From Chlorokybus atmophyticus (taxonomy: Eukaryota; Plantae; Mesostigma and Chlorokybus algae), in contig RHPI01000560.1 of assembly GCA_009103225.1 (NCBI GenBank), positions 599,379-663,378 on the forward strand: DNA of 64,000 bases, given 5' to 3'. How positions within the stretch are numbered: the stretch's first letter is position 1; each line of letters begins with the position of its first letter. Positions 9,808 to 34,649 of the stretch are shown here, piece by piece. The notes under the pieces are model-generated. The model saw only the letters and a list, made by a program, of their open reading frames with translations, searched no databases and had not been told where the DNA came from. Both the position numbers and the translations under genes were made by a program.

Positions 9808-10517
9808 TTGAAAACGCTCGGGTTCGATGGTTCCGGATCTCGGCGAGGAACCGGTTTTAGATCGCCACTCACGTGGCGTTTGCTATGCAGCAATGGTACG
9901 TCTGCAAGCCGCTCACACACTTCATTAACAAGGGGTGCCGCTGCAATTTCTAGTCTCACACCCAAGGGAGAGTCGTCTCCACCTCGCAAGCAATTACGGT
10001 GCTCGTATTGCGACATACGCAATCAGCATGAGACTAGTAGTTGTCCACACAAGTCCACCATCAGATTTAAAGATGTACTTGATGATGCACAAGTGATTAA
10101 TTTCCTCACAAGGGGGAAGGATGCATTAGCTGAAAAGCCCCGAGGTATCAGAAGAATGGTAATCAGCAGAGCCAAACGCTACTTTGTGAATGAACAAGGT
10201 TTGTGGCTGAAGTCAACCTCTACAGTTGAGAAGGACAGATTGATCCCTCCACATGAGACCCGTGCCAAGTTTATTGCGGATGCGCATGATAACTTAGGCC
10301 ATCGTTCCGCCACAGTGGTGTGCGAATGGCTAAGATAGCGATGCTTTGGGTACAAAATGGAGGAGGCAGTTAAAAAGTATGTAAAAACATGTATAGAATG
10401 CCACGCTAATGCTCTGAAAGTGCGTGAACCCGCACCACTCAAGCCAATCAAAGTGAGTGCAGCATTTGAGAGTAAGCACTGACCTCATAGGGCGTGTAGC
10501 AAGATCCAAGGGGGACA
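9808..10517 (+). pseudogene. N-terminal half of a Gypsy/Ginger-type integrase: CCHC-like knuckle, H2C2 zinc finger and start of the DDE core; truncated
   Basis: CSYCDIRNQHETSSC; 'AHDNLGHRSATVVCEWLR*RCFGYKMEEAVKKYVKTCIECH' (H2C2 with in-frame stop); then, after a frameshift, 'FE(R)VSTDLIGRVARSKGD' (first catalytic Asp region); no RT/RNase H upstream. Confidence 0.75.
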
Positions 10518-12510
10518 CTGTTGGTGCAACGTTATGCTAACTTCAATGTAATCAACTGCAATTTGTCATTTTTAATATATACTATATCAGTTGACACTAT
10601 GTGCAAGCTACTTGCAGTTGAGGCCAAGTTTGCGTTTATGTTCGATATGATACGCTATTGATGACTTAAGCAACACATCTGCGTGTTATTTCTTAACTAG
10701 TCAAAGGCAAACTCAGAGCATCTTAAACTTGCTAAGCTATGGCAATGTGCTTGTCACGCATAAGAAGCACGCCTCAACACCTCCAAAGATCTTTTTACAT
10801 AGGAGTGAGTTCTATACACATAAGGGCAACCGAAACAGCACACACAACGTCACAAACAAGCCAACTATATGTCCTGCTGTACAAGACTATCTCTGGGAGC
10901 AACAGTTATTGGACATGCTGACAGCAGCAAGGTAGTAGAACTCTATTATCATGAGCCTTCAAAGCGGCGAGGCATTGCCGGAGACTTGGCTTGCACTTGG
11001 GATGGAGAGTTGGCTTGCAGACCCAACCACATCCAAGTCTGGAAGGCTCGGTACCTGAGACTCCTGCTGTGATTCCTGAGGCCAGCACTGCTTGCAACCT
11101 TCAACATCTCGACACACACTGCAGCCTCGGATGTTGCGTGCCTGGGTTGTCTTACCTTGGTCTGCCATTGCCTGCTTCCACTCATCCGTCACGTCGGGGT
11201 GGTGGTCGGTGCATAGGGTCTGCTGGACCTCTTCCTTTCCTGTGAAGCGTGGAATGCACAAGTCGTGCAACTGCGTGGCACACCCAGCTGCGCCGCACTT
11301 GGTGGGGTGCATGCTATCTAAGTCAACAGTGATATCACAGTCAGAGACAGAACAGCCTTTCACAAACTGTGAGCGGCTCCCTGAGGCCACATCTGACTCA
11401 TTTTTCTTGTCATTTTTTTTCACATCAAGGACATTAGCCTCCTTGGGGCTGTTGGCTGTCAAATTCACAATGTTGCCGCTGCTGCTGATGGGCTTTGCTT
11501 CATTGGGCGAGGGCTCGCCTACATCGCCGCTCAGATAGTTGAGGTTTAAGAACGTATCCATCAAATCCGCTAGCGGATGCTGCAAAGCCTTTTCAGCTTG
11601 CTTGGCCTCTGCAGCAGCAGCATCATCCTGCTCTGCATCTGAACTCTCCTGCTTGTTGCTGTCGCCTTTGTCCTTGTGCTCATTAGCAGGAGGCTCTACA
11701 GCAGCTTCAGCATCCAAGTCCATAAATGCAGCGTTAGCTGGGGGGTCTGCCTTTTGCAACTCCTGCCACTTCTAATCGTCTGCCATTTCTTCCAGTGCCT
11801 CTGCGTAGCCATTCACTGCAAACAGACATGCGGGTTATGATACCTCCCGTAGCTGATCCTCGGCAATGCTCACACGTGTCACAACACAAGGCGCTTACTT
11901 GTCACAGCATTGGCCGCTGACTTAGACACCCACTGCTTCACTTTCTTGAACTTGTTGTCAACTCCAGCTTTTTGCGCAACATTGTCCTTAGTCAGCTATT
12001 GACCCAGCATTGCAAGGTGCCGAGCGGAGTTGTGGTTGAACCCTGTGAACATATCACGCACAATCTCCTTGGCTATGGCCGCATGCGTCTTGACTCGCGA
12101 AAGCGGCACAGGCGTCGCTGCGGGCTCTCCTGTAAGTGCCCTGTACTTGCTATCCAGTCCGCAGTTGTGCTTCTCGTACGCAAGCAAAGTGGTCAGCCAG
12201 GGAGCTGAGTTATGAGAGGTCCATTAACTCAAAGTGCACACTCTGCTTACTAGCTCCTCATAGGCTTTGCTAAACTTTCCGCAGTACACACTCAAAGCGT
12301 GGATGCAGGTGGGATCAGGGTCTACAAGGAATCTGCTGTACCCTTGCTTTAAGGCATATGTTGCACAGCCCGTAGCTCCAACACCAAGGTTTAAGAAGAA
12401 CATCTCCCTTGTGTCCTTGTGATAAGGCAAAGAGTCAAGAGCAAGCCTTCGGGAGAATCGCTGAGCTTGGTTGACCATCTTACTTTCAAACTTCGCCATT
12501 TGAGCGGTCC

Positions 12511-13302
12511 TGTAACAGACCACTAGGCCACAAAAGCACGAAGTGTGTTTTTGCGGCCATTGTGGCGTTATAATTTAATCGTCCGTGACATTCCCCCCCA
12601 CTTAGGTATCTAATGTCCTCATTAGATGTGAGTTTTTACAGGGCTTCTCGTCACTGAGCAGTGGAAGCGATTTTGCAATCATCACTGAGCAGTCGCAGCG
12701 CGCATTGCGCGTATGGGACCGACTGTCAGTCGCCGTCAGGCAAGTCGCGCAGTACTACCCAGCGGCGGCTCCAGGTACGCGCGACGCGTCAGAATGTCCG
12801 ACTGCCGTCCGGCAAGTCGCGCATTGACGCGCGACCCATTATGGATCGATAACAACAACCTCAAAAATCCTTCTTGGTCTACCGCTGCCAGGCGGTTTCG
12901 ACCTCAGGACCTTTTTGGTCTCAAGCTCCGATACCAATGTCAGGAGAGAGGGTGTGCCCCTCCTCCCTTTAATCCCCTACCCCAACACCACCACCAGCCT
13001 CGCCGCCGCCGCCGCCACTGCCGGGGCAGTTGCCAGAGCAAAAGATGCTCTGGCTATGGCGGCCGCTGCGTTAGCAGCGCCGCCATGCAGCTGATATCGA
13101 CATGAGACTCATGTCTCATGTCGATATCAGTGTTATAGTTAAGTAACACTACATTAGGGCCTTAACACTAGGTTAACGGCCCTAATAAGGCTTAATAGGC
13201 TGTATAATCCCGTCATCTTTCATCTTTTGCTCTGGCAACTGGGACCCTTATTTAATCCTAAATAAGGGCGGGGAACCTCTATGGAGGTAGCACACCGTTA
13301 CA
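12511..13302 (-). mobile_element. TRIM-like non-coding element with mismatched LTRs: chromovirus LTR (13302-12938), tRNA-iMet PBS, ~330 bp internal region, PPT and an 80-bp mini-LTR (12590-12511)
   Basis: Minus strand: LTR copy, then TTGGTATCGGAGC (PBS), then AATGAGGACATTAGATACCTAAGTGGGGGGGAA (nearly the same as the chromovirus PPT region), then TGTCACGG...GTTACA. Confidence 0.8.
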
Positions 13303-13638
13303 NNNNNNNNNNNNNNNNNNNNNNNNNNNNNNNNNNNNNNNNNNNNNNNNNNNNNNNNNNNNNNNNNNNNNNNNNNNNNNNNNNNNNNNNNNNNNNNNNN
13401 NNNNNNNNNNNNNNNNNNNNNNNNNNNNNNNNNNNNNNNNNNNNNNNNNNNNNNNNNNNNNNNNNNNNNNNNNNNNNNNNNNNNNNNNNNNNNNNNNNNN
13501 NNNNNNNNNNNNNNNNNNNNNNNNNNNNNNNNNNNNNNNNNNNNNNNNNNNNNNNNNNNNNNNNNNNNNNNNNNNNNNNNNNNNNNNNNNNNNNNNNNNN
13601 NNNNNNNNNNNNNNNNNNNNNNNNNNNNNNNNNNNNNN
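13303..13638. other. Assembly gap (336 N) between two head-to-head LTR copies
   Basis: Run of N flanked by ...CACCGTTACA and TGTAACGGTG... Confidence 0.99.
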
Positions 13639-14805
13639 TGTAACGGTGTGCTACCTCCATAGAGGTTCCCCGCCCTTATTTAGGATTAAATAAGGGTCCC
13701 AACGGGATTATACAGCCTATTAAGCCTTATTAGGGCCGTTAACCTAGTGTTAAGGCCCTAATGTAGTGTTACTTAACTATAACACTGATATCGACATGAG
13801 ACATGAGTCTCATGTGGATATCAGCTGCATGGCGGCGCTGCTAACGCAGCGGCCGCCATAGCCAGAGCATCTTTTGCTCTGGCAACTGCCCCGGCAGTGG
13901 CGGCGGCGGCGGCGAGGCTGGTGGTGGTGTTGGGGTAGGGGATTAAAGGGAGGAGGGGCACACCCTCTCTCCTGACATTGGTATCGGAGCACGGGCGGCA
14001 AGGGGCCTGTGGGAGGGGCGGCGGCAGGCGGCAGGCACTGCAGGGGCGGCGGCAGGCACTGCGTCGGCAGGCGGCACTGCGGCGGCAAACTAGCGGTAGT
14101 TAAAAGTTTTGTTTGGTTTAACTGTTGTAGTTAAACGCTGCTGCTGGTGCCTAGCCTAGCCTAGCCTAGCCTATGCATGCCATGCCATGCCATGCCTAAC
14201 TTGTCTGAGTTTAGTTGTTATTGTGTGAAGGGGGGCGGCCATCCAGGCCCCTCCCTGAAGCATTGCATCCAAGCACATAACAAAGTAATCATATATTGTT
14301 TACTATAATCTTTGTGTGCTAACCACCACGTGGATTCGTGGTGGTGAAGGGCTTTTTATCTATTTTTTTGGGTAAATTCCCTTGGGGGCAGTTCGGTGGC
14401 AACATCGACTGTCTCGGTACCGCCAGTCAGTGCGGTGAGGCCGCCAGAATTTTTCTGTGCGGTCGATATCAAACTCACAACTCACAACTTGTCAATATCG
14501 GCCTGTAGGGCTGATTCAACGAGATTTTGGCACTTTGGGTGTCAATTGTGATTGCAAGTTGAGCTGGGTTGTACAAAGTGAAAACATTGAGCAGCCATAG
14601 CTCGTGAGCCGTCGCGTGCATTCGCGTGCGGTTTGTTGCACAGTGATTGTCTAGTTGAGAGGTGTGTGGAGAGCTCTTGTTTGGGCTGAATACTCCACGT
14701 TTACCCCTCCAAACTTGACAGGACAAAATCACTAGTATTCGACGTTTTCATAGTGCACAACTTTCCGTGTTTGTGCACTATTTGAACAGTGTTATCCTTG
14801 GGCAG

Positions 14806-16272
14806 ATGTCTGACCAAGGAGAGGGAGGTGAAAAGTACTTTACCGTCCCTGATTCATCATCCTCATATGAGCCATCCAGTGATGACAAGGTGAGGGACTC
14901 GGACACGAGTGAGAGCTATAAGCTCACTGACAGTGACAAGGAAGAAGAGGCTAAGCAAGATAGCGAAGCTTCCCCCGACCTGTCTACCCACAGTGAGCCA
15001 GCTGTAATGGACACACCGAGTGTCATTGGCGGAGCCATTGAAAAGTATGCGCGCGAGCGCAAGACTTTACTTGACGCCCACCCGCAGCTTCGTCAAGAAG
15101 TGTGGGATGCATGGGCGCAGAAGGTTCGTAATGGCTATGAAACAGATTTTGCCACTCTCCCTCGCACTAGTAAGGAGATGGTGATCCGCATGATTGAGCA
15201 CGAGTTGACGAACAATGTTCCGCCACTCGTGCGTGGTGATCCAAAAGTGGCTGCTCTGATGGCCGTCTACGATAGGCCGCTCCCATACGAAGGGAAGCGG
15301 ATGGCGTTTGAGGCCTTAGCCAACTTGATGGTTGAAACGCAGCAGCGTTGCAAGGATGTGTTCTGGTACTTGGGACCTAACTTGGAAAATAAGTTGGCTG
15401 GCCGAGTGAAGTTGGAGGCACGCCTCGATGCGATGCAATCTGAGTTGATGGCGCTGCGTCAGCAAGTAGCGGGTGCTGCTTCATCAGTTGGCGCATCAGT
15501 GGGGCTGCCGGTTACGGCATTGAACAAACCTGAAAAGTTCAAGCCTAACGGTAGTGTAAGTATCCATGATTGGGTGGTGACTGTCGAACATTACCTGACA
15601 GCGCTAAAGCGCCCGGTGGGTGAGCACGTTGCCGTTGCTGAGTTGCTTATGCCATCTGATGCTCTCGCCGAGTGGGCACGACAAACAGAGCATGGCGCTG
15701 TGAAGACAGTACCAGCACTGTTTCAGTTTCTGATGGAGCGCTATGGTGGCATGGATCCGGCTACTCAGGCTCGTAACAAACTTAGCAAGTTGCGACAGAA
15801 TGGTCGAGCAGCATCAGTGTATCTGCAGGAGTTCCAAGCATTAGTTGGTCGTGCCAATAGCGGCCTGATGCCTATGGACAAAGCTGAGCAGTTCGAGTTG
15901 TACAAGCGTGGCTTGGATGCGCGTGTTCGCGATCAGCTGCAGTACAACACTGCAACGGGGCTTCCTTGGGTTCCTGATGACTTGGCCAAGCTGCAAAAGC
16001 TAAGTGTTTACCTGTACAATGATGACACGGTCGTGCAGGAAAAGTCGAACGTGACAGCTATGGCCAAGCCGCAAGGGGGGGGAATAAAGCGCTATCCTCC
16101 GCCGAGTGTACATGTGGCGAAGAAAGCGAAGACATTCGCTCCTCGAATTGGTGGTACGTCTGCTGGTAATGCACCTACTGCAGCTCGCACCTGTTTCATC
16201 TGCCATCAGCCGGGTCACGTTGCAAAGGCCTGTCCTACGAAGGCGAAGGGCAAAGCCAAGAAGGTTGAATAG
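14806..16272 (+). CDS. gag: Chromovirus Gag with C-terminal CCHC zinc knuckle
   Basis: 'KPEKFKPNG..SIHDWVVTVEHYL', 'ARNKLSKLRQNG..SVYLQEF', 'CFICHQPGHVAKAC'. Confidence 0.9.
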   Translation: MSDQGEGGEKYFTVPDSSSSYEPSSDDKVRDSDTSESYKLTDSDKEEEAKQDSEASPDLSTHSEPAVMDTPSVIGGAIEKYARERKTLLDAHPQLRQEVWDAWAQKVRNGYETDFATLPRTSKEMVIRMIEHELTNNVPPLVRGDPKVAALMAVYDRPLPYEGKRMAFEALANLMVETQQRCKDVFWYLGPNLENKLAGRVKLEARLDAMQSELMALRQQVAGAASSVGASVGLPVTALNKPEKFKPNGSVSIHDWVVTVEHYLTALKRPVGEHVAVAELLMPSDALAEWARQTEHGAVKTVPALFQFLMERYGGMDPATQARNKLSKLRQNGRAASVYLQEFQALVGRANSGLMPMDKAEQFELYKRGLDARVRDQLQYNTATGLPWVPDDLAKLQKLSVYLYNDDTVVQEKSNVTAMAKPQGGGIKRYPPPSVHVAKKAKTFAPRIGGTSAGNAPTAARTCFICHQPGHVAKACPTKAKGKAKKVE

Positions 16273-19200
16273 GATTACGCTGTGGCTGATGTAGCAAAGG
16301 TTGATAGTCAGTTGCTTGAGATACAAGCAGTTAACTGGTTTGATAATCTGTCTCAAATGCATGTAATGACGCATGCATGGCAAACACATCACAAGTTACC
16401 ACTGTTTGATGTTGCAACAGTGGAAGCAAATACTTGTGTACTGGTACATGTGAAATTTAACATGCTTACCGACGTGTTGCACACATTGAGTGAATTGCAA
16501 TGTAAACACAGATCCCTGAGTGTGGTAGCAATGGTGCCAAAATATCATGGCCCATGGTTGAAGTATACTCGAGGGGGTACTGTTTTAAAACAATTCACCA
16601 AGCGCGAGACTGGGACAATTCGATTATCAGCAATATTAATCAACCCCCGCATTAGTCACGGATTCTTGGCTACCTTTCAAGGACGAGTGGTACCTTTGTT
16701 GTGGACATTCAGTGGCACAATGCAAGGTGTGAATAGCTCGTTTTTGATTGACACTGGTGCGACACACAACTTCGTGGACGAGCAATGGGTTGCGCGCAAT
16801 AAAATCATGCGCAAACCCTCAGCATTTTCGGCTGCCGGTGCTGGGGGTACATTGCCAGTGACGGGAGAAGTAAAATTGAAGGTTAAAATTGGTAATTATT
16901 ATGCCAATCTTGCCTTTATAGTAGTAGCAATCAACATATCTGGTGTTGATGTGGTACTAGGCCAAGAATGGCAAAATAATGTCACAATGACATTGGATAC
17001 GGGTGCACGCTTGTGCACAGTAAAGAAAGGCGGTAAGCGGATTACATTGTCTGTGAAAGGGTCGCATAGCTTGGAATTCAAGCAACCCGACCCTGCGTTA
17101 CTCACGGCACTACAGGTGAAACGTGCGTTGCGCAAAAACACACCGGCTTTTCTGGTACATTTGTCTTCATCAGATGACATTGCGCCGGGTAGTACTGAAG
17201 GTGTGGCAGACCTCATTGAGGAATATCAAGATGTGTTCTCAGATGAGTTGCCGGGCTTGCCTCCTGACCGAGGTGTCGGACACACTATACCATTAATTCC
17301 TGATAGTGATCCTCCTTTTCGGCCAATATATAGGCTAAGCCCTAGAGAAAGGGGGGAAATGGAAACACAAATCAAGGAGTTATTGGAAAAAGGATTGATT
17401 GAACCAAGTTCTTCACCCTTTGGCGCACCCATCCTATTTGTGATGAAAAAGAATGGAAAATTGCGCATGTGTGTGGACTATCGTGCTTTAAACAAAATCA
17501 CGGTGAAAAATCGATACCCGTTGCCACGGATTGATGACGTGTTTGATAAACTATCAGGTAATGCATACTTCAGTACATTAGACCTGACAAGTGGATATCA
17601 TCAGATCCGAATTCATTCCGCTGATGTCTATAAGACAGCTTTCAGAACACCTTCGGGCCATTATCAATACAAAGTGCTACCCTTTGGATTGACGAATGCG
17701 CCTGCTGTGTTTTAGAAGGAAATGAATAAAATTTTCGGTAATATACTTGGCAAGTATGTTATGGTTTACTTGGATGACATTATTGTTTTTAGTAAAACTA
17801 AAGAGGAACATAAGCAACACTTAGAAGCGGTGTTTACTTTGTTGCGGAAGCATCATTTATTTGCCAGCCTTGCAAAATGTGACTTTTGCAAATCGGAGTT
17901 ACCATTCTTGGGACATGTTGTGAGTGGTGCGGGTGTAAAGCCTGACCCTCGCAAGGTGCAAGTTGTCAAGAATTGGCCTCAACCCAAAAATATTCATCAA
18001 CTGAGATCATTTTTGGGATTGGCAAATTATTTTCGCAAATTTATGATGGGTTATTCTACAGTTGTAATGCCCTTGACTAAATTGTTGCGAAAGGACGCGC
18101 CATTTTCTTGGACGTCAGACCAAGAAGCTGCTATGCAACAAGTGAAGTTAGCATTAACTTCAGCTCCAGTATTGGCATTGCCAAATTGGGATAAACATTT
18201 CACTGTGGTCAGTGATGCTTCCACCCTTGGGTGTGGTGCAGTACTACTGCAAGACGGCAGACCATGTGCTTATGAAAGTAGGAAGTTTATCCCAGCGGAG
18301 GTAAACTACACTACTACTGAGCAAGAGTTGCTTGGTGTCGTACATGCTCTCGAAACTTGGCGATGTTACTTAGAGGGAGTTCAGTTCACAGTGGTGACTG
18401 ATCACAACCCATTAGTATACTTCTCAACGCAGCTGACCTTGTCACGTAGGCAAGCTCGCTGGAATGAGTTTCTGTCGCGATTTACTTTTGAATGGGTATA
18501 TCGGCCTGGCAGAACTAATGTGGCAGATCCTTTAAGTCGCTGTCCGTCATTATTGGCAGTTATGCGTGCGCAATTGCTTGCGACGCAAGTTACATTGCCC
18601 GCTAATGATGCATTTGTGCAATCTGTTTTGCATGGGTATTCCTTAGACCCATGGTTCTCACGGCAAGAGAATATACAACAGCTTGAAGCACGAGACAACT
18701 TGTATTATATGGGTGCTAGCTTGGTGATACCTGACCATGCTGGGCTACGCATGCAATGCATAGCTGATGTACACGACCCACCGTACGCTGGGCACTTTGG
18801 AAATCGCAAGACTACCAAGGCAGCGCAACAGCTGTACTGGTGGCCATCGTTGCCTGTTGACGTAAAGCGTTATGTTGACACCTGTGACAAATGTCAGCGT
18901 GACAAGCCGTTACGTCAGAAACCCGCTGGGTTGCTGCGACCTTTGCCTGTTCCTGATGGCAAATGGGAAAGTGTGAGTATGGACTTAATTACTGAGCTCC
19001 CTAAGACACAATTAGGCCACACTGCGGTTGCAGTTTTTGTGGACCGATTGACAAAAATGGTTCATATTATCCCTTGTCGCACGGAGATAGGCTCCCGCGA
19101 TTTAGCAATGGTTTTTGTCGCGTCTGTTTTTAAGTTGCACGGCCTGCCGCGCAACTTTGTGTCTGATCGCGATCCGCGATTTGTAGCTCAATTCTGGAAG

Positions 19201-20043
19201 TCGCTATGCAGCTTCTTACGCATTCAGCAGAATATGAGCACAGCTTATCATCCACAAACGGATGGGCAAACAGAACGCGCCAATCAAGTGATTGAAGAAA
19301 CCATTCGGCATTATGTGAGTCCAAATCAGTCTGATTGGGATATTTATCTTCCAATGGCTGAGTTTGCGATCAACAATGCTTGGCAAGAGAGTGTGCAGGA
19401 AACGCCGTTCTTTTTAAATTACGGCGTGCATCCACTGAGTCCTGCGAATTTAAAATTGCCCGCAACCGATATAACTCGCGTACCTGCAGCGCGCGAGATG
19501 GCTTCGGCCATGCAGGATAGGTTAGCGTTGGCAAAGCACTGTCTGCGCGCAGCGCAAGATAGACAAAAAGCCCATGCTGATGCGCATCGTAGGGAGGCCA
19601 GCTACGATGTGGGCTGTTCAGTACTTTTGAGTACCAAAAATATATCCATCAAGGGAGTGGGTACCCGTAAATTTTTCCCTCGTTGGATAGGCCCTTTCAA
19701 AGTGATTGATCGGGTCGGCACTCACGCGTATCGTTTGGATTTACCAATGTCGATACGAATTCACAATGTGTTTCATGTGAGTGTACTGAAACCGTACCGA
19801 TCAGACGGTCGGGTTCAACCTCCTCCACCCCCAGTCGCAGTGGATGGTGACAATACATTTGAGTATGAGGTGGAAGCAATCCTAAGTCACCGTAAGCCTC
19901 GACGCGGACGCGCGCCGTCCTACTTGGTGAAATGGAAAGGGTATGGTGTTGAACACAATACATGGGAGCCCGAAAGGAATCTTACCAACTGCCAAGAGGT
20001 TCTTCGGGGGTACTGGAGTACTGTGTCCACACGCGAACGGTAA
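16273..20043 (+). CDS. pol: Chromovirus Pol (extra N-terminal domain, protease, RT, RNase H, integrase, chromodomain); one internal TAG at 17713-17715
   Basis: LIDTGA protease; '[12 protein letters not shown]', 'VYLDDI' RT; 'DAS..G.GAVL' RNase H; H2C2 and DDE integrase; chromodomain '[31 protein letters not shown]'; PAVF*KEMNK is probably CAG>TAG. Confidence 0.95.
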
Positions 20044-20764
20044 AAGGGTGCTGGCAGACATCTTTACCGCTTCGGCCCTGGTTCTCTCACTGCTTTCGTT
20101 TTGTGACTCGTGATGGGGCTTTGCTAACCCTTCAATGAGGACATTGAAACCTAAGTGGGGGGGAATGTAACGGTGTGCTACCTCCATTGAGGTTCCCCGC
20201 CCTTATTTAGGATTAAATAAGGGTCCTAACGGGATTATACAGCCTATTAAGCCTTATTAGGGCCGTTAACCTAGTGTTAAGGCCCTAATGTAGTGTTACT
20301 TAACTATAACACTGATATCGACATGAGACATGAGTCTCATGTTGATATCAGCTGCATGGCGGCGCTGCTAACGCAGCGGCCGCCATAGCCAGAGCATCTT
20401 TTGCTCTGGCAACTGCCCTGGCAGTGGCGGCGGCGGCGGCGAGGCTGGTGGTGGTGTTGGGGTAGGGGATTAAAGGGAGGAGGGGCACACCCTCTCTCCT
20501 GACAGGTCCAATAACTCCGCATTATGTCGCTGAGCAAAGCATTTCTGCGGTCACCTACTGCCCTGACGTCGAGCAGAATCTCCAGCGGATCCCGACCCTC
20601 ATCAACCTTGATTAGCTCCATCCTGGCATTTACCCTGCTCTTGAGATCTGAATGAGAGGCAAGGTGTTCTATCAGTTGCGGAACAACAGGTTGATTGTCG
20701 TGATAGCTGGGAAGGCTGAACTTGCGTGGCAAAGCGTAGATATGCCGGCTACCGACACCGCTCA

Positions 20765-23700
20765 TGTTGACGAACGACATCCAGTCAGCCTAACTCCCAT
20801 AGACTAAGGCATTGAGTGTTAGAAATGGCTAAGTCCTTGTGCACGTCGCACTTGCAATACGAGGACTGATATCGAGCAGTTGTGAGTCTAGAGCTCGATA
20901 TCGGTACAGACTGCTGGCGGACACTCGAAGACTCCGGACTTGGGAGCATCTGGAAGAGTCTGGCGACAGGCCAGAGCTTCGGTAGAAGTTGCGGAACTTC
21001 GTGGCTACTTAATTGCAAGGAACGTGGCATAGCTTGTTGGAAAGGTCTTGAAGCTGGCTACGTGGAGCAACTTAGAGCACCTCAATAGGACGCTTGTAAA
21101 AGGCGCAGGATCTTCTAGAGTAGAGGTGTGTAGTCTGGCTAAGTATATAAGCTAGCGGACTACACTTGCTTGAATGGAATAGTGATTGCTTTTAGCCCAA
21201 GCCTTGGCGGCTGTTGTGTTGTATGTGTCATGCCCTGCCCTGCTGCATGTGTCCACTAGCTTCCCCACAAAAGGTTAAAGGCCCACTCTACGCGTGAGGA
21301 GTGCGAGTTAGTGGAAGCGTGGTACACTGGTAGCTGACTGGTAGCATAGTCTTGGGTGTTGACTGGCTGGAGAGAGGCGCATTCAACCAAGATGGAGTCT
21401 AGCTACGACAAGGGGCAGATTGCAAAGCTGGACACTGACAACTACAGTACCTAGTGTGTGGAGATGAAGGCCTTGCTGATACACAAGAGGCTATGGAAGC
21501 ATGTGGATCCGAAGGCGACACCACCACCTGTTGAAGAGAGGTCTGTATGGCTCGAGAGCTCGCAACAGGGACTTGCCTTGATTGTGTTAAACTGCAAGTC
21601 GTATCACTTTCCCATGCTATCTGCATGTGAGGATGGTAAACAAGCTTGGGAGAAACTTGAGTCCGTGTTTCAAGCCAAGAACAATGCAAGGAAGCTGTCA
21701 CTGATGAAGCAGCTGAACTCCATCAAGAAGGAAGCTGGTGAGCCTGTCACAAAGTATTTGTCGCGTGCGAGAGAGTTGTGGGCGAACCTTGCTGATGTCG
21801 AGAGCAAGATGGAGGAGGAGGACGTTGTGCTGGCTGTGCTGAACGGGCTACCATCTGAGTATGAGGTTGTCACTCTACTGGAGACATCGTCATCGGTTCT
21901 TACCCTGGACGACGTGCTGCCCAAGCTACTCACCGTAGAGCAGAAGACAACAAAGAAGGACGACCATGCAGATGCTGTGGTTTTCTACAACAAGTATAGA
22001 AGGCCTGAAGGACACGACAAGCAGCTACGGACTGGCAACCGTGACAACAAAACTGGAAGCAGTACTGGTAAACGACATGCCAAGCTGAGATGTCATACCT
22101 GTGGAGTGGTTGGACACATCAGCAGAAATTGTCCCAAGCGTTATCAAGATGGAGGCGCAAGCACCAGCGGCAAAGAGAAGGCGTTTGCATTTGCTGCATC
22201 ATTGGGAAGACACCATGGAAGTTGGGTGATCGACTGTGGATGCGAGAGGCATCTCACGCCACATGTGGAGCTGTTGGAGGACTACACGAAGTTGACTCAT
22301 CCTGTAAAAGTGGAGGGCTTCAATGGTCATGTGCTGGAGGGCATTGGGGTTGGGAGCGTGAAGCTTCATACCCAGGTCGGTGACACTGTTCATAAGGTCT
22401 TGTTGAGGGAGGTGTTGCACGTTCCTGGTGCTGCTGCGAGTCTATTTAATGTAGCGACCGCTGAGCGCGTGGGAGCTGAGGTCATATTCAAGAATGGCCG
22501 CTGTGAAGTGAAGCTGGATGGGGTCGTGTGCATGGAGGGCGCTAAGCATGGAGGGCTCTACCTGGTACAACAACCTTGTCATATGCAAGCCTTGGTGGTG
22601 AAGGAGAAAGAGACTGCGGAGCTCTGGCATCGAAGGTTCGGGCACTTGGGCTACGGCAATCTCACTCGGTTGGTCTCAAAAGACATGGTTGTTGGCATCA
22701 ACCTGAAGAAAGAAGACTTTGAAACCGCATCCGGTGTGCACTGTGAATCATGTGTGTTGGCGAAGCAGCTTCGCGTGCGTTTCCCGTCATCTTCATTGCA
22801 TAGTCAGCATCCTGGCGAGCTTGTGCATATGGATGTTTGCGGGCCTATGCGCGTTGTGGCGAAGGGAGGGGTAAGGTACTTTGCGACATTTCTCGATGAC
22901 TACAGCAAGCTTTCCATCATCTTCCCATTGAAGGTGAAGTCTGAAGTTGCTGGAGCTGTGCGTACGGTCGTGGCATTGCTAGAGACACAAGGTGGCAAGA
23001 AGGTGAAAGCAATGCGGAGTGATCGAGGAGGGGAGTACATCAACAACGAGTTGAAGGAGTACTTCGCCAGCAAAGGCATACGCCACGAGACAACGGCACC
23101 CTACACCCCGCAGCAGAATGGAGCTGCTGAGCGTCTGAACCGGACCCTGATGGAGCGAGTACGAGCCATGCTCAACGACAATCAGCTGGAAGACAGTTTG
23201 TGGAGTGAAGCTGTCCTCACCGCCAACTATATACGCAATCGGTCACCTGTGAGTTCTGAGCAGAAGACACCGTGGGAGCTCTTCTATGGCACTGCACCAG
23301 ATGTGAGTGGCATGCGTGTGTTCGGGTGCATAGCATATGCACTGGTGCCCAAAGCTTTCAGGCACAAGTTGGAGCCAGTTAGCCAGAAAGGCGTTTTTTG
23401 TTGGCTATGAGCCGGGTTCCAAGGCTTACCGGATCCTGCTGGAGAAAGAGCAAAAGGTCATTGTAAGCAGAGATGTGGTGTTCCACGAGGGTTCATCACA
23501 GAGAGAAGCGGGTTTTTACCCCAAAAATGAAGATGAAGCACAGGCGCAGGAGTCTTTTAAGTGTGTGGAGACTGAAAGAGGCGCGGCTGTCATCGACATG
23601 GGTGCGAAGGAGAAGGATTTGGCTGTGGCTAGCAATGAAGAGCGGCATCAGCATCAGTCATCTCGGAGGTACCCTGAGAGGGAGAGAAACGAGCCAGACT

Positions 23701-25816
23701 TCTTCCACAAGGCACTTGCAGCAAAAGTGCATGAGGACAGTGAAGAGCCAAGCACCTACTTAGAGGCATTGCGGGCACCTGATGCAGAGCAATGGCAGCG
23801 AGCTATGGACGAGGAGATTGCGTCACTCCATGCCAACAACACTTGGGTGGTGGAGAAGCTTCCTGCAGGTGCGAAAGCTATCCCTGTTAAATGGGTCTTC
23901 AAGGTGAAGCGTGATGGTCAAGGCAACATCGAGCGATACAAAGCAAGGTTGGTGGCAAAGGGCTTTATGCAGCAAGAGGGAGTGGACTTTATTGAGGTCT
24001 TCGCGCCTGCAAGTAAGCATGTCACCTTTCGGGCATTGTTGGCTATGGTTACTGCGGAGGATCTAGAGATGCATCACCTCGATGTGAAGACTGCATTCCT
24101 CTACGGAGAGCTGGAGGAGGAGATTTACATTGAGCAACCACCTGGCTATGAAGAAGGCATGCGCGGTACGGCCTGCAAGCTGATTAACGCGTTATAAAGG
24201 CTACGACAAGCACCCCGTATGTGGCACATCAAGTTGACTCAAGAGCTTGAATCACAAGGCTTCAAGGCATCTACTGCTGATCCGAGGCTCTTCTTCCATG
24301 ATGAGAAGAAGGTGTGGCTACTCTTGTATGTGGACGACATCATCGTCACTGCCAGGCGGGTGGAGAACCTGCAAGAAACAAAGCTAGCGCTGCAGCAAGC
24401 ATTTTCTGTTCGTGATCTCGGGGAGGCCAAGTGGTTCCTTGGCATGGTGATCGAGAGGGACAGGGCTGCGCGTACAATTAAGATCAGCCAGGAGCAGATG
24501 GTGAAAAGACTTACAGACAAGTTTGGGATGACTGAGGCAAAGACCAAGTCTACACCTCTGGCGGTTGGTACAAGCCTCATCAAGGCAAAGGACGGGGAGG
24601 TACTCAACAAGGCTCAATATCCATACGGTGAGCTTGTAGGCAGCATGCTCTACTTGGCAGTGTGCACACGGCCGGATATTGCACATGCTGTTGGAGTTCT
24701 TGCTCGCTACATGTCTGCATCGCTTGAGCACTGGAAGGGTGCAAAGGCAGTGCTACGCTATGTGGCTGGGAGCGCTACTGTTGGCATCAAGTTTGGTCGC
24801 GGTAATATGGAGTTGATGGGATATTGCGACTCTGACTTTTGCTGGGGACCTTGATAGCCGAAGGTCTACTACGGGCTATGTGTTCATGCTCAACGGAGGA
24901 GTTGTGAGCTGGAACAGCAGGCTACAGCCAACGACGGCGGCATCCACATCTGAGGCGGAGTACATGGCAGCAGCAGCAGCAGTGAAGGAGGCATTGTGGC
25001 TTCGCAAGCTGATGGCAGATCTTGAGCATCCCATGGCATGCATCATGATCAACTGCGATAATCAGAGCGCCATCAAGTTGCTGAAGCACCCCATTGCGTC
25101 TTCACGCACGAAGCACATTGATGTTATGCATCATTTTGTGCGAAACAGAGTCACCAAGAAGGAGATTGCCTTTCAATACTGCAACACTGAAGACATATTC
25201 GCAGACTTTATGACCAAGCCATTGTCACCGGTGAAGTTCAAGGCATGTTGTGTTGGTCTTGGTATTTGTGTCTGAGCAGGAGCTTGAGTCAAGCTGCCTG
25301 CGTGGGAGTGTTGACGGACGACATCCAGTCAGCCTGACTCCAATAGACTAAGGCATTGAGTGTTAGAAATGGCTAAGTCCTTGTGCACGTCGCACTTGCA
25401 ATACGAGGACTGATATCGAGCAGTTGTGAGTCTAGAGCTCGATATCGGTACAGACTGCTGGCGGACACTCGAAGACTCCGGACTTGAGAGCATCTGGAAG
25501 AGTCTGGCGACAGGCCAGAGCTTCGGTAGAAGTTGCAGAACTTCGTGGCTACTTAGTTGCAAGGAACGTGGCATAGCTTGTTGGAAAGGTCTTGAAGCTG
25601 GCTACGTGGAGCAACTTAGAGCACCTCAATAGGACGCTTGTAAAAGGCGCAGGATCTTCTAGAGTAGAGGTGTGTAGTCTGGCTAAGTATATAAGCTAGC
25701 GGACTACACTTGCTTGAATGGAATAGTGATTGCTTTTAGCCCAAGCCTTGGCGGCTGTTGTGTTGTATGTGTCATGCCCTGCCCTGCTGCATGTGTCCAC
25801 TAGCTTCCCCACAAAA
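20765..25816 (+). mobile_element. Ty1/copia LTR retrotransposon, full length with disabling mutations
   Basis: 508-bp LTRs at 20765-21272 and 25309-25816 (at least 6 differences by eye); TSD GCTCA at 20760-20764 and 25817-25821; PBS-like GGTTAAAGGCCCAC; PPT GCGTGGGAG. Confidence 0.97.
21392..25275 (+). pseudogene. Copia gag-pol polyprotein (Gag, CCHC, protease, GAG-pre-integrase, integrase, RT, RNase H) with a stop at 21452 and frameshifts near 23400, 24197 and 24850
   Basis: 'NYST*CVEMKALL', 'CHTCGVVGHISRNC', 'WVIDCGCERH', 'LWHRRFGHL', 'DRGGEY', 'YKARLVAKGF', 'LLYVDDI', 'SRTKHIDV'. Confidence 0.95.
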
Positions 25817-28570
25817 GCTCATTCGGGTCCATACGCTCTGATGAAGGCGCTCAAGGTTCCATGGTGCAAACCAACATCATTGTCTTCGTCCTTGAAGCAG
25901 GCAACTACCACATGATCGCTGCTGGCCCGAGATGCTAAGTACGTGGCACAATTCAGTTGCTCTGCGGAAGACAACAAAGTAGCCTCAGTTGCTACATCAG
26001 GTTAATGGACCTTGCATATCCTGAAATACAACAACTTACTGCTGCTGGTGTGGTGGTAAGTGGATGTCTCCACAGCAAGGGCATCCTGTCTGAAAGTCTG
26101 CACGACGCTGCTAAGATGGTCGTCGTTTACGAGGACCACCGTGTTCCAAAAAGGCAACGGCTTGTTGTGACCGACCAGGATATCCTTTAAATCTTTGAAG
26201 CACTCGTCGGTGTTGTCAAAATCCTTGACGCTGCTGCAATGCTTGACAAACTCAATATCCACAAACACAATGTAAGATGACGGCAGAGGTTCCTCCGACT
26301 TGAACAAGCCGTTCTGGAACTACTGAGCAGTGTCCATTCGAAGGACGACACGTCGCCTGACCACTGGCAGGCGCTTTCTCTTCCAACTCCACATCTTGCG
26401 TCTACATGCAACACAGCACAGTCAGTGGCATTAACGCACCGTCAATAGACTGGCAAAAATAACCTCGACGTTGCTTACTGCGGAATTTCCACAGCGCCTT
26501 TAACTCGGCGGCTGTGTAGACCAGCTTGGAGCCCGTGAGTTCCTTAAAATCATTCCGGATGGCGACGAGAAGATCTAAATCTTCAAGTTGTTCGACATCT
26601 GTGGGCTGGCCTTTCCCTTTCACCTTGCCCGCCTTTTTGGGCTTTTTCTGTACCTTGGGTCTCGCTGCTATTAGCTCTCTGATAAACAGGTCATGCGTCT
26701 GAGCTCTCGAGAAGAGCAAATCCAGCTTGGCAAAAAGCTCAGGGTACTTTGCGCAAAGACGATCCTGATTGCTGCAAGCATAACAATTGCGTTCAGACAA
26801 ATGGCAAGCAGCTAAAAGTGGTACAAGATCTTAGACCAGGTTGAACATACCCACGCTTGCCAAAATCTTCATTAAAAGCCTTGGCAGCGATAAACCCATA
26901 GGATCTGCCTCTTTTTCGCATGTCGTCGCAGACAGTGACCAACTCTTTTTTTCTCAACAGGACAGCCGGCCGGAGTCTAAATGATCGACAACGCTCATGA
27001 TTTGGGGGGGCTCGAGTTTGGCAAAGTTGTGCAGGAAATTCAGGAAATGCCCTGCGCTGTGTTCCGCTTTCCATCGGCCATAAACAAGTCTTTTTGCTGT
27101 GCAGCACATGGAAAAAGCGCTGGTATTCTGGCTGTGAGAGGCCGAGCTCCATCGCAATCCTGCAATAGCACTGTAATTAACGGAGATGTAGAAAGCTGTA
27201 TCAGATGTTGTGCACTGTATACAGATACAGTTTCAAAGTCGTACATGACATGGACGCGCTTAGTTTGGGGGACTTTAGCCACCTCGTCATCCGTTGGAGG
27301 CGTCAAGGACTCTCGCAAAATGACCATCCATGACCGTGCGCAGTCAAGCCACGCTTCAGCCCCCCTTGTCTTGCGGGTCTACCCAATGGACAACCTAAAC
27401 GGTTGACCATACTGTTTCCCGATGTCACGCATGGCGTGCATGACCCCCAATGGCGTGGACTTTTGTCGCAGCTCATCCTGCAAGCTGTGCAGCCTACTCA
27501 GGTTGAGGATTTAAAGTCTATTGATGTTTGTCGCGACCTATCACATGTAGAGTTGTTGGTCAATTACTGAAAGTATCATAAGTTGGCAACAATAAAGCAG
27601 CCTACCTCGAACCTTTATGGCGCCCATTTTGGATCGTTTGGATGGTCATGATGCCTGCACTGATATATGGTCAGCGAGTGGTTCCCGTACAGAATCTCGA
27701 ACTGCATTCTTTTGCTCGACGGGTCCTGCAGAAACTCGTCTGCTGGCACTCGACGCCATTCTGTGGGTCTAGTCTTTTCGAGCACCAATCCAATCCACCA
27801 TTTGTAATTTGGCAGGCCAGCATCGATCACGCCCTCCACAAGCTTTAGCCTGGCCTCAGTCACCAGTCTCACGGAATGGCGCGGGCGAGCAAGCATCATC
27901 CAAGCAACGGGAACATTAAACAAGGTGTTTCCTCCAGAGCTTTGAACCAAAGGGGGCAGCTTCAACCGATCCAGCAGGCCTGAAACATAAGATAAGCAAG
28001 CGACTATTGAATATCCTATAGCAACGCACTTAGTAATTATGCCTTGAGTTAATGCACACAGAGTAATGACAAGCAGGCCAAAGCCGAATACAATAGCTCA
28101 CTTTTGTTACTAGTCTTAATGATAGGTGAGTAGTTTGCAGGTTTGTCACTATCGGAGTTATCTGAATCTTCTGATGTGGACGTGGAAGGCTTGGTTGCCT
28201 TGCCCTTGATTGGTGACGCGCTGTTATCGGGCAGGTCTGCATAGCATAACAAAAGTATTGGATTTGTCAAGCCCTTGGCAATGATATGGTATGCCATAAG
28301 CTACCTCGCAGCCATTCGAAGAACTTTTCGTTCAAGTCGTCTGTTGGATCCACAAGATGCTTTAGAACCCTTCGGTTGACACTAGCTGCAAGATCCAGTA
28401 GATCGAGCTCGTTCTCCGCCTCAGCTTCTGATTTGAAATATGAACCCCTCACTTTGGACAAAATCAGAAGTTCGGCTTTTGGCACAATGACGTCATTGTC
28501 GTCGTTGATATTGCTGTAGGCCAACCCGCGACAGTAGATGGGCTTTCCATCTGAGTGTGGGGGTTTAGGC

Positions 28571-28743
28571 CCAGGTTTAGCCGTCCTTAGACTCCAGTCA
28601 GCTTAGTCTAGCTAAGTACTGGAGTTTAAGACCATGTTTGGTCGTCCTTGAACTCCAGTCAGCTTAGTCTAGCTAAGTGTTGGAGTTTGGGACCAGGTTT
28701 AACCGTCCTTAGACTCCAGTCAGCTTATTCTAGCTAAGTACTC
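28571..28743. repeat. 61-bp tandem repeat (~2.8 copies), each unit with an internal hairpin
   Basis: Units at 28571, 28632 and 28693; core ACTCCAGTCAGCTTAGTCTAGCTAAGTACTGGAGT (ACTCCAGT/ACTGGAGT and CTTAG/CTAAG arms). Confidence 0.9.
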
Positions 28744-29835
28744 ATGACTTTCGTACTTAATCAACTCTAGTCCTAACCATTTCGCTGAAAACCGTCAGTC
28801 TTAACAATTTAAACCTTTTAAGACTGTTTTTGGGTCTGATGCTGACTAGACCTGCCTTGTATACTATCTTGAGCTTGTATATCGAGTTCTTTGCAGTGTT
28901 GACCGTTATTGGGTATAAGGGGACGCCCACACACGTTTAATATGGTTCACTTTGTTGATGCTCAAGTCTGGTGGCGGCGGAAGCCTTGGTCTTCTGTGGC
29001 GTTGTCTGGACTGGTCCGATCTGCTTGCACAGACGGTTTGAGGGTGTTGTGTTGTGTGTCTACGCCTAGGAAGCTTGCATCTCAACACTGAGCACCACGC
29101 TCCAAGTAGGGCGTAGGTAGTTGTGTTGCCCTGTGCACGGTAAGTTAAGCCGGATCTTGGAACTCAAGTAACCCACGATCTTGGTTCTCATGTAATCCAC
29201 GCTTATAAACACAACGCTCACCTTACGCTTCGCATTAAGACGGTTATTTCCTTGACCCATGTACCGCAACTATTAAACATGTTGGCGCTCAGCTTGACCT
29301 ATTGATTTTAAAACTGCAACGCTTGGTACGAGTCTGACTTTAATTGAATGTTTTTTTTTAGCCCATGGCAACTCCCAGTTGCTATCTGTCAACACAAGCT
29401 TGTCACGTACTTGTAAATGTCACACACAGTTCAGTTCAGAGACATCTGCTGCACACCCTTGGTTATTCAGATGAGTAGATGACCAGCTTATCTGCATCAC
29501 TGCTGACACTAGAATCTTCTTGGTCTTTCTCTTTGTTGTCGCTGGGCTGATCGTCACTAGTGTCTACTTGCTTCTTGTCTTGCTTGTCATCATTGGAAGA
29601 AATCTCGACCGGCTTTTTCAACTTTTTGAAATTTTCAAATGTGTGTCTTCTGCTGAGGAGTCTTGTCTTGCTTCCTTTGTTGTGGCACTTTGTTTCGACT
29701 GCGTGCCTGCAGGCTTTCGTTGCAATCCCTGATCAGGACAATTGCCAGGGGTTGTCTGCAGCTCACAAAGTAGTAAGTTCATACGTGCGAAGCAATCGTA
29801 CTTTACTTGAGAACTCTAAGAGCAGGAAGCTAAGG

Positions 29836-30140
29836 GAGGTTTAAGATCTTAAATTTCCAAGAGCAGGCAGCTAAAGAAGGTCTAAGATCTTGAACCTTTC
29901 TTAACTTGGAGTGAAGGGAGGTCCAAGATCTTAAACCTCCAAGAACAGGCAGCTAGGGGAGGTTTACGATCTTGAACCTCTGAGAGCAGGCACTAAGGGA
30001 GGTCTAAGATCTTAAACCTCTCTTAACTATAAGTCAAGGAAGGGTTCAAGATCTTCAACCTCCAAGAACAGGCAGCTCAGAGAGCTCTAAGATCAGGCAA
30101 TGACTCCACAAGATCTTGAAACTCCAAGATCTTGTGGAGT
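29836..30140. repeat. Array of ~22-bp AGATCT-centred palindromes (~41-bp period, six complete and one partial) ending in a 16-bp-stem hairpin
   Basis: Consensus GAGGTTTAAGATCTTAAACCTC is a perfect palindrome; 18-19-nt spacers of two recurring types; ACTCCACAAGATCTTG-aaactc-CAAGATCTTGTGGAGT at 30103-30140. Confidence 0.9.
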
Positions 30141-30466
30141 GATCTCAGCAGCAGGACAAGGAGCAGCAGAAGGAGTGCTGGAATGGTGAGGGCAGATGTG
30201 AATGCTTCGATCTGCACAAAGTAGTGTCCTCATGTGCTTTCTCCCCCTCTGGAGTGTCCTTGTTTGCACTGCATAGCACCATACACCATTAGTATCAATT
30301 TTCTACAACGGCAATAGCAGCTAGTGGCAAGGTGTTGCTGGTGGCTGTGCCGACAGCAAGGTACAGCTACCAGCAATGTACCAGTGTTCCAGCAATCAAC
30401 TACAACAACAACTTCAACACAGCAATTTGGTAACAGCGCAGCAACTTCAATTCAGCAACCACTCAA

Positions 30467-30690
30467 TTGCTGCGCACACAAGTTGCTGTGCGCAGCAATC
30501 AACTACAATTAGTAACAATGGCAACTGGGACACAACACACAACAATTTAGCAGCCAGTTAATTGCTGCGCACACAAGTTGCTGTGCGCAGCAATCAACTA
30601 CAATTAGTAACAATAGCAACCTGGACACAACACATAGTAATCAGCAACCAGTTGATTGCTGCACACACAAGTTGCTGTGCGCAGCAATCA
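30467..30690. repeat. ~95-bp tandem repeat (three hairpin cores, third unit partial), each core with a 12-bp stem
   Basis: TTGCTGCGCACA-caagttgc-TGTGCGCAGCAA at 30467, 30562 and 30656 (third has one mismatch). Confidence 0.9.
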
Positions 30691-31054
30691 ACCACAAAGG
30701 AATACAGTGTTGCTGGTGCTGCTGCTGCTGCTATAGCAGTAACAACTAGCAGCGGCAGCAGCGACAGCACCAGCAGCAGCAGTCAGAAGCAAGCATTGCA
30801 ATAACAAACACTACTAAAAAACACAACACAAACCTGGTCGACTTGCGCTCTGACCCCCCCATGCTGCTGCATGCACGCCCACGCCCTGCACCGGCCCCTG
30901 CCGCCCACGCCCACGTCGCCCCAATCAACCCTGTCCCCACACACGGAGGCGCCGCTTCTCAAACTCCTACACCCCTTGAAGTCTCAACACCGCCTCCGCC
31001 CCTGCCAACGCCGCCAAGGCCCCCGCCAACGCTACTGCCGCCCCCGCCAACGCG

Positions 31055-31227
31055 GCCCTAAACATTAGGGTTTCTGACTATGGCTGCCGAGGCTATGGCT
31101 GCCGAGGCTATGGCTGCCGAGGCCAGAAACCCTAAGTGGCTGGGCGCTACCTCTCATACCGCGAAAGCAACTCTGTCGCAGTAGCTCTCATACCGTGAGA
31201 GCTACTGCGACAGAGTTGCTCTCGCGG
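31055..31227. other. Structured module: telo-box inverted repeat around a 3x15-bp tandem repeat, followed by a 32-bp-stem hairpin
   Basis: TTAGGGTTTCTG (31065-31076) and CAGAAACCCTAA (31124-31135) flank (CTATGGCTGCCGAGG)x3; perfect 25-bp stem 31166-31190/31196-31220, extending to 31159-31227 with one mismatch. Confidence 0.85.
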
Positions 31228-34069: not shown

Positions 34070-34649
34070 TTACTTACTTTCCTCACCCCTCACAACATAA
34101 GGGACAAGCCTGTTGACATGCACCGTTTTGTAAGTGCCGGTATCAAGATGCCTGATTTCCACTTGACTTCTTTCTTTGTTGCAACTGCACTTGATCTCGT
34201 AATCCGTGAGCCACTTTGCTTTAATTTGTGCGCGGGGGCACGCATAACTTCATACGTTGCTTTCTTCTCAACCAAGACGCACTGTGAGGGTTGATGGGAG
34301 TTTTGCGAGATAAGAATTCAGCAGATTGCTTTGCCCGAGCTTCAGCAACATTGTTCGCCGCATGTTTATGCAACTTTTGCAATGCCTGTCCATTTTTTAT
34401 GAACCATTCTCCATCCAAATCTTCCAAGTCCATGACATGAAAGTTGTTTCCCTCAATTGCATTGTCACTAAGGAGTCGTGGTTCACAATTGTATAGCATG
34501 CAAAAAGGGGAGAATGTTGTGATGCGTTGGCGCATCGCGCAATATCTCAACATTGCAAAAGGTAACGTATCATTCCACATGTCTGTATACGTCTGTGCGT
34601 ACTTAGCAATTGCAGACGTGATGGGTTGATTGAATCTTCCAACCAATCC
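34070..34649 (-). pseudogene. C-terminal half of a Gypsy/Ginger-type integrase (catalytic Glu helix and GPY/F-type tail)
   Basis: 'GLVGRFNQPITSAIAKY..WNDTLPFAMLRY..TTFSPFCMLYNCEPRL', then after frameshifts 'KWLTDYEI..TVHVNRLVPY..ESK*'. Confidence 0.8.

Follow-up and report, generated by a model that had tools for sequence, protein, structure and literature searches.

The stretch of Chlorokybus atmophyticus DNA analysed here (64,000 nt of contig RHPI01000560.1, positions 599,379 to 663,378; hereafter the window) probably contains the dead remnant of an accessory ('cargo') gene from a multi-copy family of cut-and-paste DNA transposons in this algal genome. The open frames between positions 10959 and 28524 form one gene-like series on the minus strand, which lies under two LTR insertions. 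The evidence supports the classification of this copy as a pseudogene, and the existence of a multi-copy family supports its association with a transposon. The encoded protein may once have combined DNA-binding and methylase-like parts, a kind of protein already published for algal transposons. The initial annotation, made from the sequence alone, had described an intron-containing gene combining ParB, methyltransferase and PHD domains beneath these insertions; the frame series, the insertions and the motif strings were all recovered, whereas the domains were recognisable only at the level of motifs.

Both LTR insertions are flanked by 5-bp target-site duplications, as originally described. 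The nested Copia LTR retrotransposon (20765-25816, plus strand) contains 508-nt LTRs that are 98.8% alike and is bordered by GCTCA at 20760-20764 and 25817-25821. The nested Gypsy-type block (12511-20504, with GGTCC at 12506-12510 and 20505-20509) is composite and consists of an inverted LTR and primer-binding-site unit (13302 down to 12511) positioned head to head with a full Gypsy-type element (13639-20504, plus strand), the LTRs of which are 98.8% alike. An N gap (13303-13638) separates the 5' ends of the two LTRs. A single GGTCC duplication flanks the entire composite block, and excision of the block together with one GGTCC copy fuses ...SYWT to AQMAKF... in frame, reproducing exactly the junction reported previously. 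Since the N gap is located within the Gypsy block, no host frame crosses it, and the placement of 10959-12510 next to the remainder of the series therefore depends on the scaffold join, the matching duplication and the frame.

The series comprises nine open frames on the minus strand (E1 to E9), on which all four of the motif strings quoted in the initial annotation were located (in E2, E6, E7 and E8). E1 (28267-28524), the first of them, contains no ATG. E2 (27615-27965), which includes the ParB-like motif EILYGNHS (27698-27675), ends in a TAA situated 12-14 nt before the nearest GT, a likely splice donor. E3 and E4 (26793-27327) form a single coding stretch that is broken in this copy by the loss of one base each at 27092 and 27042; sister copies have an extra base at both positions. 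This stretch reads through in one frame once an unknown base is placed at each site, and at least this one frame change, from 27327-27040 to 27152-26793, is due to the two deletions and not to an intron. Together with likely premature stops, these deletions bear out the earlier view that the copy is otherwise a pseudogene. E5 (26402-26800) includes a lysine-rich stretch resembling a nuclear-localisation signal, and E6 (26002-26307) contains the proposed 'motif IV-like' strand IVFVDIEF (26271-26248), which has no prolines. E7 (20505-20762), with YHDNQPVVPQLIEHL at 20705-20661, joins E8 (12224-12508) once the Gypsy block is excised, and E8 contains a segment resembling motifs I-II of SAM-methyltransferases (LNLGVGATG...VDPDP, 12394-12311). 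The last open frame, E9 (10959-11759), encodes an acidic low-complexity part followed by a Cys/His finger (11354-11190) and a second CxxC...CxxC cluster reaching 11085.

Contigs aligning to the stretch were found in run X1 (36 contigs) and run X2 (25 contigs), most with 88-95% identity. The contigs of both runs behave like low-coverage DNA. They cover 25950-28430 at 88-95% identity and represent several copies that differ by 5-12%, span frames and spacers alike and contain frameshifting indels, which identifies the family as a decaying repeat. No more than three distinct sister-copy contigs cover any one site, and the contigs extend to about 28800. A shared form with a 556-nt deletion lacking GT/AG borders also occurs among the contigs, so that both diverged and internally deleted copies exist, as for a multi-copy transposon cargo gene. 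A single-copy host gene was considered and ruled out because the diverged copies cover the spacers as well as the frames; the previously suggested transposon-borne nature of the gene thus gains a multi-copy family in its favour.

Tandem inverted-repeat arrays with periods of 61, 41 and 95 bp (28563-30697) lie beside the ParB-like gene, on its upstream side. The first (28563-28742) immediately precedes E1; it consists of three 61-bp units and has inverted arms of 13 nt. The second (29814-30133) contains about seven 41-bp units, each with the GATC-centred palindrome AAGATCTT; TRF called a period of 41 with 6.9 copies over 29814-30094, and the last two palindromes (30110 and 30126) are located just past this call. 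The palindrome occurs nine times in the window versus 0.63 expected (14-fold enrichment), with seven of the nine sites in 29814-30133 and all of them confined to 10786-30133, and the units in the array are candidate binding or target sites. A lone site at 10786-10793, 166 nt past the stop codon, suggests that the element extends at least that far. We infer that the third array (30448-30697; TRF, 95 bp x 2.6, with an internal inverted repeat) also belongs to the element; it shares a 14-nt motif with 10550-10563. Element ends, the definition of which had been proposed as a check, did not emerge: comparison of 10300-11000 with 28750-33500 for terminal inverted repeats yielded only 9-14-nt motifs. 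Furthermore, no transposase-like frame is present in 28800-34400 or anywhere else in the window. Given the lack of both transposase and terminal inverted repeats, the copy at 10959-28524 is truncated or rearranged.

The proposed domains are motif-level resemblances detected by no profile library. Pfam, PHROGs and NCBIfam returned nothing relevant for the nine pieces, so that the profile searches suggested to verify the ParB/Srx and methyltransferase assignments gave no library match for any piece. A PDB sequence search with four pieces produced chance matches only, as did tblastn against phages apart from a single phage ParB-like match, and tblastn against plasmids gave no ParB or methylase match. 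Two pieces were also scanned against viral and metagenome sequences, with a single false positive as the only result: a metagenome 'relative' that proved to be a chance resemblance within a bacterial membrane protein. All searches were run piece by piece, and domains split across pieces may therefore be under-scored.

For the ParB-like piece (27965-27615), the three libraries gave no match even at E 1-10, the gathering score of the ParB/Srx N-terminal domain (PF02195; Pfam ParB_N) was not reached, and a word search and an exhaustive search of 1.84 billion proteins found no relative. As no relatives were available for a multiple alignment, an AlphaFold2 model was built from the single sequence and was unusable (pLDDT 36). 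The lead to ParB came from the language-model Atlas (score 0.91) and from a phage ParB-like family, which was chosen through the piece's own short tblastn match (E = 7). BLASTP aligned this family to E2 with 46% identity over 26 residues, and FEILYGNHSL...HPNDPKW coincides with the G-N-H and W positions that never vary within the family. The hhalign probability of 74% over 28 columns and the HMM E-value of 0.004 within the window both refer to a family picked via the E2 match itself. Of the ParB/Srx-like domain claimed initially, the short motif match thus survives without any profile-library match, and a ParB-like motif in E2 is weakly supported.

The Cys/His cluster said to follow the methylase-like part is present in E9 and has the spacing C-x4-C-x13-C-x4-C-x4-H-x2-C-x14-C-x2-H. 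Its description as PHD-like is weakly supported by profiles that score below their cut-offs (PHD_NSD, E 0.075, 13.8 bits, cut-off 23.9; zf-RING-like, E 0.015, 15.9 bits, cut-off 26.6).

The enzyme-like part had been interpreted as a genuine phage-derived beta-class N6A/N4C DNA methyltransferase with the motif order IV ... HPxQKP ... I, perhaps altered in its catalysis and joined in one protein to ParB and a PHD reader, a reading we regard as unlikely. Prophage fusions of ParB with beta-class enzymes do exist, as the annotation stated: Pfam confirms ParB_N and N6_N4_Mtase in the 'DNA methylase' of Wolbachia phage WO (L013:934-2163), which follows the proposed order of ParB, DPPY, HPxxKP and motif I, and PF01555 domains have been published in algal transposon cargo (10.1101/2025.02.11.637652, PMC12477816). 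Yet the Wolbachia phage protein is a compact, intronless product of 409 aa that retains DPPY and has its HPTMKP at a distance of 25 residues ahead of motif I, and the Chlorokybus pieces showed no BLASTP or HMM similarity to it. In hhalign, GVGATG...FLVDPDP aligns to GSGTT...fiGiEi of beta-class enzymes in the proposed register (P 0.046, probability 1.1%), which gives the motif I-II assignment weak support at a very low probability. As in beta-class enzymes, this segment closes the enzyme-like part on its C-terminal side, and IVFVDIEF is separated from motif I by about 180-230 residues, close to the range of 152-184 measured in real enzymes. An AlphaFold2 model of the motif I piece without alignment was unusable (pLDDT 45).

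Membership in the N6_N4_Mtase family was not borne out, as Pfam gave no match (PF01555) for the methylase-like pieces and an HMM of 12 beta-class enzymes showed no signal above window background. The three pieces assigned to the methylase ranked 714th, unreported and 375th among 1661 six-frame segments of the window, 1037 of which gave a reported match. The site proposed as catalytic motif IV reads D-I-E-F, and a (D/N/S)PP(Y/F/W) pattern was found in none of the three minus-strand frames of any gene part; judged from these frames, this copy lacks the motif with which an amino-methyltransferase performs catalysis. The HPxQKP-like string (HDNQP) fares no better, being located about 105 residues before motif I (GVGATG) versus 25 residues for the HPxxKP-type motif in all three reference enzymes where both were found.

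Another possibility, which we consider quite unlikely, is that the gene encodes a transposon protein of unknown fold, in which short motifs resembling ParB, methylase and PHD domains arose by chance within some 1,000 decayed residues. The negative library, PDB and exhaustive searches, the plasmid search without a ParB or methylase match and the spurious metagenome relative would all be expected under this reading, and the language-model scores of 0.86-0.91 share few features. On the other hand, three independent weak leads follow one another as the domains do in a published architecture, the ParB-like match coincides with the invariant columns noted above, and the palindrome arrays adjoin the gene, an arrangement also reported for transposon genes of the ParB-like kind.

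An alpha-class Dam-type methylase of the chlorophyte type, with an N-terminal ParB helix-turn-helix and directed at the GATC cores of the palindromes, is highly improbable: the Atlas clusters nearest the motif I piece are Dam/D12 fragments (score 0.86), the palindromes are GATC-centred and a ParB-HTH Dam family has been described (PMC4738411), but Pfam gave no match to the Dam/D12 class (PF02086), hhalign and a custom HMM made from 9 Dam enzymes gave background scores for the window pieces, BLASTP against E. coli Dam found no match, and the acidic tail begins only about 450 nt after the motif I piece, which leaves no room for the catalytic half with its target-recognition region and DPPY. Both custom HMMs (nine Dam and twelve beta-class enzymes) were built from phage and E. 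coli records; the sequences retrieved by a word search with E. coli Dam were all near-identical enterobacterial Dam proteins, too uniform to serve as a profile.

The favoured reading, a decayed transposon cargo gene, is supported by comparison with published systems, as the proposed architecture fits a known class of accessory proteins carried by algal transposons (PMC12477816, PMC4738411, bioRxiv 10.1101/2025.02.11.637652). Sola1-1_Ec32 of Ectocarpus, a giant Sola-superfamily DNA transposon, likewise contains a large gene, encoding ParB-like and N4/N6 methylase domains opposite the transposase (PMC12477816). Those domains were called on an intact 1104-aa product, whereas the Chlorokybus copy is broken, has no transposase in the window, is recognisable as a methylase only at motif I-II and encodes a zinc finger thereafter. 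In red-algal Plavaka elements, PAG2 combines PF01555 with SET, and PAG3 combines a ParB-like part with a 2OG oxygenase and is adjoined by inverted-repeat arrays (10.1101/2025.02.11.637652). Carriers of PAG2 and PAG3 include EnSpm/Plavaka, Mutator, Zisupton or Fanzor-encoding elements (10.1101/2025.02.11.637652). The Plavaka cargo resembles the Chlorokybus family in its tandem inverted-repeat arrays beside a ParB-like gene, in the degeneracy of most copies and in a ParB-like part that is weak even for HHpred (e-value 0.29 in that study), but distributes the two activities over two genes, whereas the single Chlorokybus series appears to combine ParB-like and methylase-like parts. Chlorophytes encode a ParB-HTH module fused to a Dam-type adenine methylase, with ancestry in phage ParB-terminase loci (Iyer et al., PMC4738411); this is a comparable green-algal fusion, but its motif I precedes the catalytic motif, for which the Chlorokybus layout has no space at that position.

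The probable cargo-gene copy at 10959-28524 is fairly ordinary because it is broken, lacks a transposase, is cut by retroelements and may have encoded a protein of a kind already published. Nothing functional is possible in this copy, which adds little and mainly records how LTR elements became nested in an old DNA transposon. The intact gene would have encoded a large nuclear protein of three parts, namely a DNA-binding part of ParB/Srx-like type towards the N-terminus, a part resembling SAM-methyltransferases that ends with motif I-II, and a zinc finger of the cross-brace type. If it acted like the published accessory proteins of algal transposons, the ParB-like part would bind the palindrome arrays of its own element and the enzyme-like part could then mark the bound DNA or chromatin, which might help the element to evade silencing or to regulate its own activity. 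A more specific proposal, that in intact family members a single protein forms a self-addressed epigenetic system in which the ParB-like module recognises the element's own GATC palindrome arrays and a divergent amino-methyltransferase or pseudo-methyltransferase, in concert with a histone-reading finger, writes or reads a mark there, is speculative and has the odds clearly against it.

Transposon-borne proteins with DNA-binding and DNA- or chromatin-modifying parts are a recently recognised route by which elements manage their own epigenetic state. Should other loci of the C. atmophyticus genome contain active members, the family would extend this class to an early-diverging streptophyte lineage, and the GATC palindrome arrays would provide a concrete, testable binding or methylation target.

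The series of minus-strand open frames at 28524-10959 is split by two LTR retroelement insertions within a eukaryotic, LTR retroelement-rich window, and its anatomy, including both insertions and their target duplications, was correctly recognized in the initial annotation. The Copia element (20765-25816), whose LTRs of 508 nt are 98.8% alike, is bracketed by the target duplication GCTCA at 20760-20764 and 25817-25821. The Gypsy-type block (12511-20504) is flanked by GGTCC at 12506-12510 and 20505-20509. It is a composite of a complete, chromodomain-bearing Gypsy element (13639-20504; LTRs of 339 nt, 98.8% alike; tRNA-Met-type primer-binding site) and a small inverted unit running from 13302 down to 12511, whose start repeats this LTR and primer-binding site. 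An N gap (13303-13638) sits between the mutually facing LTR 5' ends of both units, and therefore lies wholly within inserted retroelement DNA and is crossed by no host frame. The gap flanks are 100% complementary over 289 nt, and a single 5-bp duplication (GGTCC) brackets the head-to-head pair. Either the two units were inserted as an unusual inverted dimer, or their arrangement is an artefact of assembly where scaffolds were joined. As initially noted, excision of 12511-20509 rejoins SYWT to AQMAKF in a single frame, and this restored frame and the matching 5-bp duplication argue that the scaffold join across the gap is correct.

Open frames tile 84% of the minus strand at 25822-28524, vs 45% of the plus strand. 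The region 25700-28900 was compared with contigs of two other public runs, which are short and shallow and most likely represent DNA. The two runs contribute 36 and 25 matching contigs, mostly at 88-95% identity, which span frames and inter-frame spacers alike with at most three distinct contigs per site. Both runs also contain a 556-nt deletion form (26939/27496) with one filler base and without GT/AG ends, which marks a derivative of the element family that has lost internal sequence. The diverged contigs over frames and spacers, together with the common deletion form, are characteristic of a decaying repeat family, to which the gene series belongs, and a single-copy host gene was rejected. 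Furthermore, the 13 substitutions listed among the contigs for the ParB-like frame (27965-27615) are distributed 3/7/3 over codon positions 1/2/3, and several sister copies carry indels of 1-2 bases; hence these copies are without purifying selection.

At two positions, 27092 and 27042, sister copies are one base longer, and insertion of an unknown base at both sites causes the frames 27327-27040 and 27152-26793 to be read as one. Because the sister-copy bases restore one frame at 27327-26793, the present copy contains two frameshifting 1-base deletions rather than an intron. Likely further defects are a TAA at 27617-27615, which lies 12-14 nt ahead of the closest GT (a predicted splice donor), a stop interrupting the frame upstream of 27327, and the absence of an ATG from the first open frame. 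The initial description of this copy as a pseudogene was correct.

Upstream of the first frame are three tandem arrays, with units of 61 bp (x 3; 28563-28742), 41 bp (x 7; 29814-30133) and 95 bp (x 2.6; 30448-30697). The 41-bp units bear the GATC-centred palindrome AAGATCTT, which occurs nine times in the window (0.63 expected), ranging from 10786 to 30133, with seven copies in the array, one in the gene and one 166 nt beyond the stop codon. It is absent from the nested retroelements and the rest of the window, a distribution which suggests that the old element covers at least 10786-30133. No transposase-like frame adjoins the element or lies elsewhere in the window, and a search for terminal inverted repeats between 10300-11000 and 28750-33500 found none. 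A Gypsy-type integrase N-terminal zinc-binding-like fragment at 9808-10338 (+), ~600 nt past the gene's stop codon, may mark the truncation point or the insertion point of the old element.

The four motif strings and the Cys/His cluster behind the proposed ParB, beta-class N6/N4 methylase and PHD-like gene were all found where they had been reported. Searches were conducted piece by piece, without a joined or spliced product, and no piece matched Pfam, PHROGs or NCBIfam at E values up to 1-10 or any relevant PDB chain. For the ParB-like piece, no relatives were identified in a word search or in an exhaustive search of 1.84 billion representatives, and its clusters in a protein language-model atlas were ParB_N and DUF6551 at 0.90-0.91, with few features in common. 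A phage tblastn returned one chance-level match (E = 7), to a protein annotated as a ParB-like nuclease, and this match coincides exactly with the protein's motif. When aligned by hhalign with a 39-member alignment of this phage family, which was chosen via the same match, the piece yields 28 columns at a probability of 74%, and the G-N-H and W that are invariant in the family are among the matched residues. An HMM of the family singles out the ParB-like frame among the window's 1661 segments (E 0.004; runner-up 6.3). The phage-family match supports, but does not prove, the ParB-like assignment, since the family was picked through the same match. A single-sequence AlphaFold2 model of the piece has a pLDDT of only 36 and gives no usable structure.

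Membership in the beta-class N6/N4 methylases is not borne out by the tests applied. HMMs built from 12 beta-class enzymes, including a Pfam-verified ParB_N and N6_N4_Mtase fusion of Wolbachia phage WO, and from nine Dam enzymes score the candidate pieces no higher than window background, and (D/N/S)PP(Y/F/W) is absent from every minus-strand frame. The proposed HPxQKP-like string, HDNQP, lies ~105 residues ahead of motif I, vs a spacing of 25 residues in all three reference enzymes showing both motifs (HPxxKP to motif I). For the motif I piece (12508-12224), hhalign pairs GVGATG...FLVDPDP with motif I-II of the beta-class enzymes, and the register is the one originally proposed, but P is only 0.046. 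Its atlas match to Dam-type fragments is weak (0.86), and a Dam layout would require a catalytic half after motif I, for which there is no space here. The single-sequence AlphaFold2 model of this piece is likewise unusable (pLDDT 45). An apparent metagenome relative (L022:1371-1463) shares ALDSLPYH within a 720-aa bacterial membrane protein and was dismissed as a chance match. The putative PHD-like finger does contain the Cys/His cluster (C-x4-C-x13-C-x4-C-x4-H-x2-C-x14-C-x2-H), but its Pfam matches, PHD_NSD and zf-RING-like, are sub-threshold.

Elsewhere, the window contains a host-like multi-exon gene at 1695-4774 (-), in which a WSD/DDT-type domain (Pfam E 5.6e-12) is accompanied by bromodomain-like frames. 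Host-like fragments with Pfam matches to multicopper oxidase, GYF and CCCH zinc finger, Plus-3 domain and shikimate kinase are located at 48508-50268, 52303-54486 and 62514-63203. The initial annotation also called a putative Gypsy element at 38576-41100 (+) whose protease and reverse transcriptase are separated by a C5 cytosine methyltransferase.

Transposon-borne genes of the ParB-like plus methylase kind have already been published in algae. Ectocarpus Sola1-1_Ec32 encodes a ParB-like and N4/N6 methylase gene (1104 aa) opposite its transposase (PMC12477816). Red-algal Plavaka elements encode PAG2, which combines PF01555 with SET, and the weakly detectable ParB-like PAG3 beside inverted-repeat arrays (10.1101/2025.02.11.637652). 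Furthermore, fusion to a ParB helix-turn-helix has been described for a Dam family of chlorophytes (Iyer et al., PMC4738411). The copy analysed here is dead and truncated; at the level of its family, a transposon-borne, phage-like ParB and methylase module is a plausible reading by analogy with these elements.
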